Assembly (NCBI GenBank): GCA_965649765.1
Contig: OZ287759.1
Span: forward strand, 27,652,001-27,716,000
Length of the DNA: 64,000 nucleotides
Reading direction: 5' to 3'
DNA from: Bispira polyomma
Lineage: Eukaryota
Positions 16,997 through 31,710 of this stretch are shown piece by piece. Position numbers and translations under genes: made by a program. Position 1 is the first letter of the stretch. Every line of letters starts with the position of its first letter. The notes under the pieces were generated by a model that was given only the letters and a program-made list of their open reading frames with translations, was not told where the DNA came from and did not search any database.

Positions 16997-17253
16997 GGGG
17001 CCGCGGTGGCCTAATGGTTAGCAAGCATTGCGCTTCACAATCACTGGTCTCTCACCTCTGGGTGGCGTGAGTTCGAATCCCGCCAATGCCTATGTGGGAA
17101 AGGTGGTAGTTCCTTACTGTGGGCCGCTGGTTTCAGTGCAAAACCTTGACCGACTGTATGCAGTGTTTCCTCCAGCGTTTCCAACTACCCGTCCCAATAT
17201 AACCTACTAAAAGGTACTAGAGTGGACGTTAAATATCCAAATTCAAATTCAAA
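16997..17253 (+). mobile_element. tRNA-derived SINE, young family, copy 1
   Basis: A-box TGGCCTAATGG, B-box GTTCGAATCCC, (caaatt)n tail, TSD cttaaacatata/cttaaacacata; near-identical to the copies at 23591, 31459 and 39045. Confidence 0.92.
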
Positions 17254-20830: not shown

Positions 20831-21615
20831 ACTGTTCCAAATAATCATAGCAGAACACTTCATTTCTGTATTAATCTGTATTTGCCACCAAAAAATGTTT
20901 AACTTATGTAGCAGTAATTAGGCATCATTAAGTAGCAGTAACTTGCCAGTAAGTAGCTCTACATTGTAGGTACTGACAAAGTGGCCATTTTTATTATATT
21001 TAAATTATAAATTCATCTTAAACGTCACAAAAAGGTCACAAATCGTTACATCATGAAACGTCACAAAACGTACAATTAACCATAGAATATTCCTATTATT
21101 AGGTGGCAGTACGTTTGAAATTTGTTGTGAAACATAACTATCTTCCGTTACTAAACCGCCCTTAAGGGGGGGTTCCACATTCAAGTTCGATCGGCAAAAA
21201 GTCTCCGACTTTAAAGTCGGGGTGGTCGGGACCAAAAAATCAATAAAATCCCATTTTTGGGCGGGAAAATGAAAATGTGCTCCGACCTTCCCGATCGAAC
21301 TGATTGCACCCGGTTTTGATGGTCCCGCAACCCCGTTTATACGTAAAGGCCATATGACTTTGAACTCCATTGACCCCCGATTTTCTGACCTTGATAGGAT
21401 CAAACTTATTGGTGATAGGATCTGACGTATTGGTCATCCCGACCAATAGGATAAAACTTTCTGAAAAACGAAGTCGGGAGTGCTTTCAGACCCTGTAAGT
21501 ACCCCTTTTTAAGCCCTAAAAATTTTTGAGTAATCAGGGTATTAATAATTGAGTAATTGAGTAGAATGCCAGGAAGAAGTGATAAAGATTTTTAGTGTTT
21601 TTTTTAGATTGAAAT

Positions 21616-22818
21616 ATGCTTATGCTTATATTACAACATGAGAAAGACAAGGCTCAGGCTCAGGAAGATTTGAACCCAACACCATCACGTGCCCCTTGGG
21701 CTCTCCCGGAGAAGATTAAACTTCCACGTATGTCACCCATCTGCTGGGTGAAGCCTAGGATCAGTCAGAGAGAGGCCCAGGAAGGGGATGTAGCCTCATA
21801 CAGGAATTTTTCAGGCTACCACATGATATATTTGAAGAAATCAAGGATAGGATAACACCCCATGTGAAAAAAACAACAACTTGGTACAGAAAGCCCTTGG
21901 ATGTTGGACTGAAACTGGCTGTAACTTTGAGGCACCTGGCCACTGGGGAGAGCTACAGGTCCCTATCATACCAGTTCAGGGTGGGGAAATCATCTATCAC
22001 CAAATTTATATACCAGAAGTATGCAAGGCCATCATTAAGGAATATGAGACAGAAAATCTAGCCTGCCCAACCACCCCCGCAGACTGGCTGAAAATGGAAG
22101 AAGTCTACAGGAACAGGTGGAATATCCCTCATGCTGTTGGATCTATTGATGGGAAGCACGTGGCCTTCAAGAAGGCTGGGAGTGAATTTTACAACTACAA
22201 AGGCTTCCACTCCATTGTCCTATTTGCCCTGGTTGATGTGGACTACAAATTTATTTGGGTGGACATTGGCTATAGTGGTTCCTGTTTCGACGCCCAAATT
22301 ATTAACCACTCAGAGCTCAAGCAGAAGATAGAAGATAGGTCCATTGGGCTGCCCAGACCTGCACCACTGTTTGAGGGGTCTCAACGTGACATGGAATACT
22401 TCCTGCTGGCCTGAAAACGTGGATGATGAAACCCTACTCAAGGAAGGAACTCACCTATGCACAAAGAATTTGTAACCACAGAATATCCAGGAGAAAGTGA
22501 GTGGTGTAGAACGCTTTTGGGATATTGGCCAGCCGCTTCCGGCCATTACTGACGACGATGCAACAGCACCCCCTAGTGGCCTCAAATCTGACATTGACAT
22601 GTGTGATATTACATAACATACTGAGAAGCCGGTGTGGAAACCCAGCCCTAGAGCACCCCAACCCACAAGATGATCCACCTGAACCCGAGGTGCAGTTGGT
22701 AGGAGATCAACCGACCACCCACAGAAACCTATCCAGGGCGGCCAAAGAACAGAGGGACGTGTTAATGGACTTTTTTATGAATGAGGGGGAAGTCCCGTGG
22801 CAAGAGGAAAGAGCCTGA
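21616..22818 (+). pseudogene. Harbinger (HARBI1-like) DDE transposase, frameshifted
   Basis: Motifs KLAVTLRHLATGESYRSLSYQFRVGKSSI, WNIPHAVGSIDGKHV, FYNYKGFHSIVLFALVDVDYKFIWVDIG..GS..DAQI and CVILHNILR. There are several frameshifts, and the conserved Asp segment between YFLLA and KTWMMKPYS is deleted. Confidence 0.93.
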
Positions 22819-22882
22819 GCCTAACCACCTGAGCGAAATGAGAAGCCAACCCAGAGGTCTTGCAGTAGCAGAAAATTTAAAA

Positions 22883-22930
22883 GGTCCTTTTTAGGACCAC
22901 CCAAATATTTCAAGAACAATATTTGAGCTG
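22883..22930 (+). terminator. Histone-type 3' stem-loop plus downstream element after the transposase stop
   Basis: aaaaGGTCCT-TTTT-AGGACC-ACCCA: perfect 6-bp stem, 4-nt pyrimidine loop, A-rich 5' flank and ACCCA 3' flank, starting 64 nt after TGA. CAAGAACAATATTTGAGCTG starts 12 nt after the stem. Confidence 0.8.
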
Positions 22931-23590
22931 TTTTTTACACCCCCACCCCCAACCCATTACCAATAACAATCACTAAATGTAATACCCAGGACCCCTACAT
23001 ACATACAACTAAACCAGTCCCCCCACAAAACATTGAAAATGTTAAAAGCCCTACACACACAGACATAATGAAAACCCTTTGGTACCAGTTGTTTTGGTCA
23101 AAAAAGGGTTAAAATCCAAAAAAAGTTGTGTGACCACTCATTTGGAAGATTTTTCTCTCAGGATGTTATTTATTTTGTCTACAAAAATATTGCATCAACA
23201 CAAAAATTAAAGTTTAAGAAAAGTTGCTCAATTCCTTTTCCTCAAAATTGTTTGTGAATTTTTCCCCGCCAAAAACACACACAGTGCATTACAGCATGGG
23301 GAGTACGTATCTCAATTTGGCACTTATTGGGTTATTTGGGACAGACTTTGTACTGTCTTTCCTTCTAAAACAATTTATTGCCATTATTGTCTGTCATTAT
23401 TAAAACATTTACTATAGGGATGGGGAGTTTATATCTCAATTGGGTACTTATTGGGACAGATTTGACAGACTTTCTATTTCTTTTTTCTAATAATATCTTA
23501 TATTTGGTATCCCTTATCATTTAACAAAAACATTTCCAATGGGGATAGGGTTTTTCATTCTCAATTAGATTCTTACTTGGGCAATTTTTG

Positions 23591-23843
23591 GGGGGGCCGC
23601 GGTGGCCTAATGGTCAGCAAGCATTGCACTTCACAATCACTGGTCTCTCACCTCTAGGCGGCGTGAGTTCGAATCCCGTCGATGCCTATGTGGGAAAGGT
23701 GGTAGCTCCTTACTGTGGGCCGCTGGTTTCAGTGCAGAACCTTAACCGACTGTATGCAGTGTTTCCTCCAGCGTTTCCAACTACCAGTCCCAATATAACC
23801 TACTAAAAGGTGCTAGAGTGGACGTTAAATATCCAAATTCAAA
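23591..23843 (+). mobile_element. tRNA-derived SINE copy 2, nested in the Harbinger
   Basis: Same family as 16997; TSD tgggcaatttt on both sides. Confidence 0.92.
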
Positions 23844-24137
23844 TGGGCAATTTTGGGAGGTTTTGTTTTTTTCCCCTATTCTCAAACAAAATTATCTAAA
23901 CAGGGACATCTTTTACTTTACAAGTTGGACATTCACAAACAATTATAGGGGGGTGATAAGTAAGTTTTGTCTATATGAGAGCTATTTGTTTTGTGTGGCT
24001 AAATAATCTGTTTGTTTGGGCTAATGTTTGGGGTTTGTTTCTTGGGACAATGATAATCATATTTCTGTCTGTATGTGTGTATTTATTTTGAGGGAACAGT
24101 GTAATCTGTATGTTTGGGGTTTATTTTTTTCAACAAA

Positions 24138-24185
24138 AGCTCAAGATATTGTTCTTGGAGGAATCGGGTGGTCCTAAAAAGGGCT
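24138..24185 (-). terminator. Degenerate histone-type 3' stem-loop plus downstream element after the MADF gene
   Basis: Minus strand AGCCCT-TTTT-AGGACC-ACCCG (4 of 6 stem pairs), then CAAGAACAATATCTTGAGCT 12 nt after the stem, the same spacing as on the plus strand. AATAAA follows at 24125-24120. Confidence 0.7.
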
Positions 24186-24259
24186 GGAGGTGACGCTGGG
24201 TTGGCTCGAAACACACCACCCCTTTGGAGACTGCTGACTGGCTACTGCGGCGGTGTTGG

Positions 24260-25861
24260 TCATGGAGTGGTAGAGGTAGACGGTGCTGGTAAAGCGGGCT
24301 TGAGGTGTAGCTGATGCTGTGACATTGGCTCGGACTCTGGCTGAGGTATGGGGGGAGCTGTGAGACGACCAGCTGCTAAGTGTTGTCGATCAGGACCACT
24401 TGTGACTGCTGATTGACCACTGGTAAAGGCGTTACCAATATTCCTGGGGCGCTGGAACTAACTGTCTCATATCCAAAGTCCTGGGGTAGTTTGCTGTTGT
24501 ACTTCCTCAGAAAGCTCGAAAAGGTTGACGTTGTGCGCCGACTCCTCAAACAAAGACGCATTAGAAGGTGAGTTTGAATACTGCTTACTAGGAGAAAAGC
24601 TCTGCATTTTCAACTTAGTAGCAACCCCTGAATGTTCTTCCATGCTGGAGTAAGTTGGTGACTTCACACTGTGAGACGCCCTTGTGAGACCACTGTGAGA
24701 AGACTCTGTAGCTGTACCCACCACAACGTATTGTGGTGGGTGCTGAGACTGCTGGGACGGAAAGTTCTGTTGGTAGCAGGCTTCTGCCGAGACGACCCAG
24801 CAGCCGAAGACTCTGTAGCTGTTTCCACCATGACGTACTGTGGTGGAAGCTGAGACTGCTGGGACGGAAAGTTGATTACGTAGCTTGGGACGTAGCTTGA
24901 TTAAGGCGCTCGCGACAGGGTAGACGTCGGAGCTGGTCTGGAGAAAGCACTTTTGACGGGTTGACTTCTGCCTTGCTAGATCTGGCAGAGGCAGAAGGTG
25001 CTGTCTCGGAACTTCTGAAACTCGCCCTCATCCAACTTATCTGCCTCGGATGCTAGGTAGGTGAAAAAGGCGCTACGGTTGGTCACAGGCTTCTGAGGAC
25101 TTCTCTGCTCTCCAACCAAGCGTTGGATCTGCGTCCTGATCTGCGTGACGTGCTCTCCTAGCATCTGGTTGGCGTCTGTGCAGGGAACTTCTCGGAAGGC
25201 TCCTCATGCTGGTCTCGGTGACGCTGTCGCCCTCTACTCTGATGCTGGAGCATCTGGACACATCATGGCTTTCCTGACTGGGTGGTGACAATCCCTGAGT
25301 GGACGTTGCGCTGGGCTTGAAGCCTGAAGACTTGACATGCCTGACGATGTGTGATCCCAGAAACGAGAAGCGCGCGATCAGCCAGTTCTCTCACTGTGTA
25401 AAATCAGGTGGGGCTTGTCCAGACTTCTTAACCATCAACTTTCCGAAGTGTGTCCTCTGTGACTCAAACCAAGTCCTAACCTCATTGGTTTTCAAACCAT
25501 TAGTAGCTGCAAAATTGGACCACAACTTCTCCTTCAGTGTCCTGTCCTTGAACTGTTTGTGGTACTTGTTAAAAAGCACTTCGTTGTCTCCGACAAAATC
25601 CACCACTGCTTGTTCGTCCTCCTCTGCAAGTATAACGTGGACCATTTTCCCTGCCTTCTTCACGCGTCCCCTGTACTGTGAGTTATACTTCACTCCTTGT
25701 GAAGCATCCTCTCTCTCACTCTCTGCTCTCTCACTCATTGTCGGACTCCCTCTGTCATCTCTCCTCTTCCTCTCTATCTCATCAGATGAAACTCCCACTT
25801 CAAATTCCTTCTCTCTCTCCTTCTCCACAATCTTCCCCTTAACTCTCCTCAATCTAGGCAT
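24260..25861 (-). pseudogene. Harbinger second gene: MADF/Myb-SANT-like DNA-binding protein with BESS-like motif, decayed
   Basis: ATG at 25861. MADF-like segment EQAVVDFVGDNEVLFNKYHKQFKDRTLKEKLWSNFA...EVRTWFESQRTHFGKL. An in-frame TGA is followed by ENWLIARFSFLGSHIVRH, and later RSAFFTYLASEADKLDEGEFQKFR. The S/P/Q-rich C-terminus has an internal ~108-bp duplication (24700-24873); the exact 3' end is uncertain. Confidence 0.85.
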
Positions 25862-26739
25862 CTTTAATACTGTGTAATAATAAAAAAACCTGAGGTGTAA
25901 ATTCTTTCCTATCTCAGTACATATAATTAAAAACAATAAAAACCCCTGCAGAAAAAACACAACTTCAAGTACCAGTCAGCAAGTACCATCTGCAAATACA
26001 ATGAGTCCAGTACTGACGGGATGTTTTTATACCCAAATACCCTGTACTGCATAAGTTCAATCCTATTGGTCGGTACTGACTACATCAGATCCTTCTGCTG
26101 ATAAGTTCTGTCCTATCCTCCCCCGGTTGATCTTTTGCCTCTCCCGGCAGATCTGATAGCCAATACGTTCTGTCCTGCTGTGTTAAGTTTGATCGGGGTA
26201 AAACAACTTATTCACACCAAGTTCTGCCAGGGTGACAAAAAGTACGATCCGGGAGTAATACGTCAAGTCGGGAGACAAATAAGTTCGATCGGATTGCCGG
26301 CCCAGCCTGTTGTATTGAAAAAGGGACAGGCCCGGCCGGCAATAGGGCAGTGCGCCCCAACCTATCCGACAGAGCGAATTGGCAATAGGATCGAACATAT
26401 TGATGGTTCTGATTTTGAGGTCCGGGACCAAAAATCGGACACTTTTCAAAATATCTAGCTTTTTTGATATTCTTCCCAACCTTCCCGACCACCCCATTTT
26501 TGGTCCCCGCTCTCCCCATATGTGTCCCGGACCTCAAAGTTGGGAAAGTCGGGACCAAATCCTGAATGTGGAATCCCCACTTTAACAAGGTCAATGACCT
26601 CATAATAACCATATCACACACGTTTTCACTATGATATTGGGTCATACATTCAACGGGAACAATAAACTTTACAGTGAGATGCACGTGTAGATGTGACCGT
26701 CCCATAAATGGGACAATAAAAGGCAAATATATAGAATCT

Positions 26740-27530
26740 ATTAATAACATAAAGACATCTTTGTGAATTTCCGTGAAGTGTGTATTTCAACATGTTTAAA
26801 TGGAGCAATAAATAGCCAATATATAAAATATACTAATAAAATAAGACGTCTTTGTCAGTTTCTGTGGAACTACTAGGGGTTGGGCTTCTCTAAATTGGTA
26901 AAACTTTTAATTATTGTAAATGTTATGGGTACATCGTGTTGGTTTTTATGTCAAAATAAAATTATATGGTTATTAAAAAATATATATGTCCCAACAATTG
27001 GTCCTCATTCATATTGTTTACCTCCTTTAGTATTCCTTCATCCTACTACCTCTTTTCCCCTCCACTTATCCTTGCCTAAAAATTATCACAACTTTATCAA
27101 CCTTTATCTGAACTTGTGGGTGTGTGACTGTGCATTTCAGTATTGGTTAATGGAGCCATGGATGGTCAGTATATAAAATGTACTAATAACATAAATGCAT
27201 ATTTGTAAGTTTACGTGGAGAGGACATTTTAATATTGTTAAATGAAGCCATGAATGGTCAGTGTATAAAATCTAGTAATAACATAAAGACATCTTTGTCA
27301 GTTACCGTGAAGGGGCATTTTAATATTGATAAATGGGGCTATAAATGACGAGTATATATAAAATACTCATAACATAAATGTGTCTTTGTCAGTTTACGTG
27401 GAGGGTGCATTGTTATATTGTTAAATGGAGCCATGAATGGCGAGTGTATATAATCTACTAATGACAAAAAGGTATCTTTGTCAGTTACCGTGGAGGGGCA
27501 TTTTAATATTGATAAATGGGGCTATGAATG
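26740..27530. repeat. ~91-bp minisatellite array, interrupted at ~26870-27120
   Basis: Unit tactaataacataaagacatctttgtcagttaccgtg...aaatggagc.atgaatgg.cagt.tataaaa starts at ~26740, 26831, 27181, 27273, 27364 and 27456. Confidence 0.85.
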
Positions 27531-27929
27531 GATGGAGTGTACAGCTAGCTAATGGCCAGTCGTATAAACTCTACTTAATGTAAACAGTCTTGTTCTTGTC
27601 GACTTGTACAGTTGTATACATTGGGAATATATATAAAATAGGAATAAATCTAGCATTGGGTGGCGAGTGTGCGTGTATATCATCCAAAGCTTTATTTGCA
27701 ATCATTTTATTACAAGGCCACGTCCATTGATACACATGCATTCTCTCCATACACCCCTTCCCCCACAAACTCCCCTTAAACCATTGTACTTACACCACTT
27801 CTTGTACCAAAAACATAAATTATTAAGTATTATTAAATTAAAGTGGTCTGCCACTACTATAGCCTCTGTGACGATGTTATTGTGGATGTTTTGTTATCAG
27901 CAGTATACTGTTTAGACTTATAACTGTAC

Positions 27930-30700: not shown

Positions 30701-31458
30701 GGACTGACTATATTATCAAAAAAAAAAAAAAAATCAAGAATTAATTATGTAGAATTATACTGTTCTATGTTGAAAAAGCTAACACTCCTGGTCTTATTTC
30801 TGTGATTCCTATGTGATTGGTATTTCCCCACAACCATAATGTTCACAAGCAAGTGGTAAAATGGCACAGGATTTTTGGGGTCCGCTCTAAGGTCAAAGAA
30901 ATTGTGGGAAATACTGATGGAGTAAGACTTCCAAAGCTTAATAAAGTTTATATTCATCAATGATCTTGTGTTATTTTTGTTTTCAACAAAATATTCCATA
31001 CTTGTAGAGGTTTTATTATATATGGAGAGATTTATGTTATTTATATTCGTTGTTTCCAACAACCTCCCTCTGACCTGCCTTTTTAAAAAACTATTCTTGT
31101 TTTCAATGTGGTGCCTGGTTGAGGGTATGTGCGTGTGCGTGTGTGGGGGGCAGGAGAGGTGGGGGTAATTATTGACTAGTCAATAAATAAGGTCAGGATG
31201 GACAGAGTGAGAAACAGGAATTGATTGAATCAATTTAGCTGGGATGGGGGGAATAGACACAAGCGGACACCCTGAAGTCGTCATCCTCCTTATATGCAAA
31301 TTGTCAATAATTTCCAAGGACTATTTCCATCAGAGTTAGTTATTTTAATAACTGTGACGTAAACAAAAAAATAAACTCCTTTAAACAATATGCGAACCCG
31401 TATATAATAGTTATAATGGTTTCATGATTTCCACAAAATATTGACCTATTTTTTTTTT

Positions 31459-31710
31459 AATTGGGATATTTAACGTCCACTCTAGTACTTGTTTAGATCA
31501 TATTGGGACAGGTAGTTGGAAACACTGGAGGACACATTGCATACAGTTGATCAGGATTCTGCACTGAAACTAGTGGCCCACAGTAAGGAACTACCACCCT
31601 TCACACATAGGCATCGACGGGAGTCAAACCCACGCCAGCCAAACTAAGAGGTAAGAGACCAGTGATTGTGAAGCGCAATGCTTGCTAACCACTAGGCCAC
31701 CGCAGCCCCC
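31459..31710 (-). mobile_element. tRNA-derived SINE copy 3 (more diverged)
   Basis: Reverse complement ggggctgcggtggcctagtggttagcaagcattgcgcttcacaatcactgg...gtggacgttaaatatccc. Confidence 0.9.

Follow-up and report, generated by a model that had tools for sequence, protein, structure and literature searches.

A Harbinger transposon with histone-type stem-loops and the host's form of histone downstream element after both of its genes

Each gene of a PIF/Harbinger transposon in the Bispira polyomma genome is followed by a stem-loop of the type that ends replication-dependent histone mRNAs and, shortly after it, by the downstream element found in the host's own histone clusters. Because the transposon retains both parts, as the host has them, behind each of its genes, we infer that the mRNAs of the two transposon genes are probably clients of SLBP/U7 processing. 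In that pathway the hairpin is the site of SLBP binding, base-pairing with U7 takes place at the downstream element, and the cut by CPSF73 falls in the stretch separating the two. The window analysed here is the whole stretch of 64,000 nt, which is without N; the element and its parts lie in it as follows.

21162..21164, no strand: left target-site duplication TTA, from copy comparison
21165..21185, plus: left terminal inverted repeat, about 21 bp, imperfect
21566..22818, plus: Harbinger transposase gene, frameshifted in the window copy (Pfam DDE_Tnp_4, E 1.5e-9)
22883..22903, plus: histone-type stem-loop A, GGTCCT-TTTT-AGGACC, with ACCCA (Rfam Histone3, 37.6 bits)
22911..22929, plus: downstream element A, CAAGAACA-N5-TGAGCT, 12 nt past the stem
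23593..23844, plus: high-copy SINE-like insertion in the spacer, target duplication about 14 bp, unrelated to Harbinger
24120..24125, minus: AATAAA on the MADF strand, 13 nt past element B, present in the consensus too
24138..24157, minus: downstream element B, CAAGAACA-N6-TGAGCT, 12 nt past the stem
24165..24185, minus: histone-type stem-loop B, with ACCCG, 4 of 6 pairs in the window copy
24242..25861, minus: MADF (Myb/SANT-like) gene, broken in the window copy (Pfam MADF_DNA_bdg, E 1.6e-5)
26561..26581, minus: right terminal inverted repeat
26582..26584, no strand: right target-site duplication TTA

The element occupies 21165-26581 of the window, with the transposase gene on the plus strand (stop codon 22816-22818) and the MADF gene convergent with it on the minus strand. 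By its sequence features it is a PIF/Harbinger transposon, as an initial annotation of this DNA had called it: a DDE_Tnp_4 transposase, a MADF second gene, short terminal inverted repeats, a 3-bp target duplication and dispersed copies were all found. Identical TTA or TAA flanks both sides in eight of the 13 two-ended copies. The plan of two genes, transposase plus MADF, is that described for PIF/Harbinger (PMC9710019).

The 1.04-Gb genome yielded at least about 34 scored copies, spread over many chromosomes. The family consensus, built from 25 copies that are 92-97% identical to it, is 5.6 kb long and has two ORFs, each single and uninterrupted, for a transposase of 446 aa (with the motifs DGKH, GDDAF and RRVVE) and a MADF protein of 573 aa. 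The window copy is dead, its two genes being frameshifted and its spacer interrupted by a 252-nt repeat; no intact copy was found among those fetched, which are a subset of all copies. TCGGGA-type short repeats, likely binding sites for the MADF protein, crowd both element ends (window 21200-21480 and 26190-26555).

Other repeats lie in and around the element. The 252-nt repeat has further copies at 16997-17248 and 31455-31710 of the window, a tRNA-like start, an AAATTC-type tail and a contig depth about 100x that of its flanks; ARAGORN made no tRNA call in it, and it is probably a SINE. A degenerate tandem repeat with a unit of about 91 nt (26704-27540) lies just to the right of the Harbinger element. 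A fragment at 57827-58795, with a zf-RVT match below cut-off, probably comes from a LINE.

The letters and coordinates of both hairpins and both downstream elements are as the initial annotation gave them, and the common element does lie exactly 12 nt past both stems, starting at 22911 (+) and 24157 (-). Hairpin A begins 64 nt past the transposase stop in the window and hairpin B 56 nt past the MADF stop. The Rfam Histone3 model bears out the histone assignment for hairpin A, whose 37.6 bits exceed the cut-off of 34 and make it the only above-cut-off Rfam match in the window; for hairpin B of the window copy there is no match at E<=10. The latter is a decayed form, differing from the consensus by two substitutions, one of them at a CpG, and it folds poorly (z -0.19, vs -3.2 in the copy L038). 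In the consensus both hairpins are perfect, A being GGTCCT-TTTC-AGGACC at 75 nt past the transposase stop and B being GGCCCT-TTTT-AGGGCC at about 56 nt past the MADF stop, and the two differ at pair 3 by a both-sided swap of T-A vs C-G. Model R1, built partly from the window's own family, gives hairpin B 34.5 bits.

Hairpin A retains six of six pairs in 15 of 17 copies. Among family copies the signal was not found to be better conserved than its flanks; this counts against its processing by SLBP/U7 and is also what is expected, because the copies are dead. The window has two occurrences of the joint pattern of hairpin plus element, and 100 shuffles have none. Next to the window hairpins no histone coding sequence was seen, in agreement with the initial annotation.

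The host's own histone genes supply the comparison for the downstream element. The pattern hairpin-ACC-N6-10-CAAGAA has 2241 matches in the genome, vs none for the reversed pattern, and many of them sit in tandem units of 4.8 kb with H3 genes inside; at the H3 gene C1:30826411-30826788, for instance, the hairpin follows about 43 nt later and CAAGAA lies 12 nt past the stem. Three other hairpins of the 4.8-kb unit, which presumably belong to the remaining core histones, read CAAGAACA-N5-6-TGAG, a pattern with 1286 matches genome-wide and none in the control. Since the element after the transposon hairpins matches the host histone clusters in both sequence and distance, the transposon carries the host's own downstream form. 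The initial annotation cited the sea urchin and vertebrate forms of the histone element; the form here is the host's CAAGAACA..TGAG and neither of those. One point speaks against processing by SLBP/U7 here, namely that the H3 hairpin itself has no TGAG match at that spacing. A further tandem array (C4:54707086-54812449, 1727-bp period), with a Histone3 match of 40.6 bits in each unit and absent from the listed H3 matches, is possibly a separate linker-histone array.

SLBP is encoded by the host, at C5:32.895-32.898 Mb. A search for U7 gave three 55-nt Rfam candidates, at C1:73052658-712 (+), C9:22468440-494 (-) and C2:92328237-291 (-), all below cut-off. Two patterns of complement plus Sm site had no match on the U7 candidates, the second being judged among the matches listed, which cover two of the three, and the U7 complement patterns were only about 1.4 to 2.6 times as frequent as the reversed-pattern control.

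The transposon-type stem occurs at 568 dispersed genome sites, often as facing pairs 0.8-1.3 kb apart, and at least one further subfamily is among them. Of the best DDE_Tnp_4 matches on C1 and C2, few are near such sites; the trait therefore belongs to some families and not to all.

We compared 96 loci around related transposases, plus two later. By a strict rule that asks for a histone hairpin no further than 150 nt past the stop, the signal follows the transposase in 18 of the 75 loci whose flank is long enough. There are 22 strict hairpins in the 11.6 kb just past the stop on the sense strand, and none in about 495 kb of other zones or in shuffles; six more strict matches, and no others, were found, and they lie on the other strand at a greater distance downstream, in L052, L056, L058 and L063. 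The one in L052 lies 32 nt past a 443-codon MADF frame, while in the other three loci the tie to a MADF stop is less clear. After the transposase the hairpins stand 17-107 nt past the stop, on the sense strand. With a model made from the relatives' hairpins, cases that are weaker or decayed are picked up in L084, L091 and L145 and on the MADF side of L055, which brings the carriers to 23 foreign loci, about 21 distinct families, with the signal after the transposase. In L055 itself (7170-7214, minus) a decayed hairpin and an element ending TTTGAGCT are seen on the MADF side only, and AATAAA follows the transposase.

Pairwise identity among carrier transposases is 31-70%. Both-sided changes were seen in four of the six stem pairs; since a pairing rule served to select the hairpins, neither the share of paired positions nor the invariance of some of them is free of circularity as evidence. 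Independent support comes from the position of the hairpins and from the Rfam score, eight relatives' hairpins reaching the Histone3 cut-off. The downstream element differs between families (CAAAAACAATTA..CAGCT, CCCAAAAGAGCA, CAAGAAAGT and others), is common to both ends of one element, and has a purine-rich start at +13/+14 in nearly all. Coding regions are intron-free insofar as the consensus ORFs are single, and extra DNA inside the transposase was found in 0 of 20 carriers vs 9 of 46 non-carriers (p 0.048, kinship ignored).

All carriers come from marine or metagenome assemblies. The signal is absent from five relatives with named hosts (Mercenaria, Lytechinus variegatus, Lingula, Strongylocentrotus and Portunus), which have AATAAA instead, and tracking of the host by the downstream element is therefore shown only for the window's genome. 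The exact host-type pattern had no match in JGI metagenomes, as follows from downstream elements differing by host. Four loci (L139, L140, L142 and L143) place Harbinger-like transposases on contigs of bacterial metagenome-assembled genomes, Sedimenticola among them; this is probably contamination from animal hosts.

If the transposon mRNAs are processed in this way, then in active family members SLBP would bind the hairpin of both pre-mRNAs, the host U7 snRNP would pair with the downstream element, and CPSF73 would cut about 5 nt past the stem, the cleavage on the hairpin A transcript being predicted to fall after 22903. The products would be transposase and MADF mRNAs without poly(A), under SLBP control. 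[quoted passage not shown] As to benefit, our guess, looser than the rest, is that both required proteins would be made together in replicating cells, where cut-and-paste jumps could raise copy number; this seems the most natural reading. For the co-option of SLBP/U7 that the initial annotation proposed there is sequence support as regards the Harbinger identity, the signal after both genes in the consensus, the match to the host and the retention in distant relatives; cleavage after ACCCA, SLBP binding, U7 pairing and S-phase or maternal expression are predictions. Its argument that ending two convergent transcripts early would avoid their overlap, and so dsRNA, is weak, because non-carriers share the layout: the hairpin-less L053, L146 and L148 are also convergent, with AATAAA after the transposase.

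The main rival, which we regard as unlikely, is that the hairpin serves SLBP alone or in part (for stability, translation or oocyte storage), with many or most transcripts polyadenylated at the downstream AATAAA or at the hairpin. The AATAAA that follows element B in the window and in the consensus fits such dual use, and from its position it is a possible back-up poly(A) signal. Depletion of AATAAA near carriers was not found (8 of 20 carriers vs 23 of 46 non-carriers), and this, with the AATAAA so close behind element B, counts against processing by SLBP/U7. Four relatives have tandem arrays of two to four hairpins at 23-26 nt spacing (L052:6329-6370, L057:1321-1383, L063:2571-2649 and L078:1532-1630) in which only the last hairpin is followed by a downstream element, the others resembling extra SLBP sites, and SLBP-dependent polyadenylation that is independent of U7 has a precedent (PMC11997800). 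Against dual use, an element that would serve U7 is kept at a fixed distance past the last hairpin and matches that of the host histones. A search for RNA runs containing the sequence yielded only three unlabelled contig runs, which are not on record as RNA. A search for retrocopies with hairpin plus poly(A) tail found none, which is uninformative on the type of 3′ end.

A quite improbable alternative is that the signal is a functionless passenger, namely a histone 3′ end that was picked up in one or more captures and copied across by inverted duplication or gene conversion. The ends of the elements are indeed mutually inverted repeats, over 56 nt at 80% in the consensus and over 70 nt at 91% in L063, where the repeat stands at both ends of 1804-2581 with palindromic repeats mid-way; in L058 (1996-2879) an imperfect palindrome of about 900 nt lies between two hairpins. 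One end was therefore probably copied to the other end of the element.

The distribution of carriers over the transposase tree likewise suits a passenger. They are not one clade: the tree requires 10 changes, at least seven of them forced by strong branches, and a single origin without loss was rejected by the tree test (p-AU 3e-63). The tree leaves out long branches, duplicates and one untestable locus, and it is rooted at the midpoint, because of which gains and losses are indistinguishable among these changes. The decayed versions in L055, L084 and L145 may be added on the same side. At the finest scale, L078 has a hairpin array (1510-1650), and L133 and L065, with 90-92% DNA identity across the transposase, have none, the sequences diverging about 10 nt past the stop; this is a recent switch of 3′ end type, and such close relatives without the signal weigh against SLBP/U7 processing.

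What speaks against a passenger is a well supported group of eight carriers that includes the window's family, in which the proteins are only about 50-58% identical and the 3′ regions have little in common beyond the signal. The confinement of the hairpins to the sense strand within a short distance of the stop points the same way, as does the lack of any histone coding sequence seen beside the window hairpins. Moreover, the stems of the host core histone clusters are of the GGCTCT/AGAGCC type, and the stems at issue here are mostly of another type.

A role at the DNA level or otherwise outside the histone pathway, for example as a general terminator or in binding the MADF protein, is very improbable: the two hairpin units do form an internal inverted repeat, but it is the short repeats near the element ends that are the likely MADF sites, and the units are recognised by the independent Histone3 model and stand on the sense strand after stops. 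Chance resemblance, to which a hairpin of only 16 nt might seem prone, is refuted by the shuffles and the reversed-pattern controls (0 matches in both, vs 2241 in the genome).

Returning to processing by SLBP/U7, we lean slightly towards a wider proposal, by which a widespread set of Harbinger elements in marine animals would be the first non-histone SLBP/U7 clients, would have switched repeatedly between poly(A) and histone-type ends with the downstream element matched to each host's U7, and would thereby tie both of their proteins to DNA replication. Replication-dependent histone mRNAs are described as the only cellular mRNAs known to end in this stem-loop (PMC4604434, PMC5054213), and CLIP of human SLBP found no non-histone client (PMC4604434). 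No report linking Harbinger or other transposons to the histone 3′ signal was found in the literature searched, outside which lay Repbase and most subscription journals, where an earlier note is possible; transposons go unmentioned in a 2026 survey of the histone mRNA pathway. Each part was known before, and the combination appears to be new; should processing be confirmed, the transposon mRNAs would form a new class of SLBP/U7 clients.

If the proposal is true, a transposon breaks the rule that reserves stem-loop ends for histone mRNAs, a cut-and-paste element has a concrete way to time itself to S phase, and such elements are invisible to RNA-seq with poly(A) selection. The need for the downstream element to suit the host's U7 could limit horizontal transfer between hosts. 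L078, which has the signal, and the near-identical L133 and L065, which lack it, amount to a natural experiment.

Among known systems, the element shares with other PIF/Harbinger transposons, such as zebrafish Harbinger3_DR, its two genes, short terminal inverted repeats and 3-bp TTA/TAA target duplication, and differs from them by the histone stem-loop and downstream element after both genes. Drosophila maternal histone mRNAs (PMC11997800), stem-loop mRNAs possibly with a poly(A) tail, are the model for the main rival; those, however, come from histone genes and are independent of U7, whereas the transposon keeps a U7-facing element. With the histone 3′ end (RF00032) the transposon has in common the 6-bp stem, the 4-nt loop, G-C at pair 2, U at loop position 3 and ACCCA, as well as a purine-rich element at the host's distance, closeness to the stop and an uninterrupted ORF. 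Its distance of 56-75 nt from stop to hairpin is longer than the median of 30 nt in metazoan histone mRNAs (10.64898/2026.10.14.759114), and it differs most in that the signal, with the processing predicted from it, is on non-histone genes of a mobile element.
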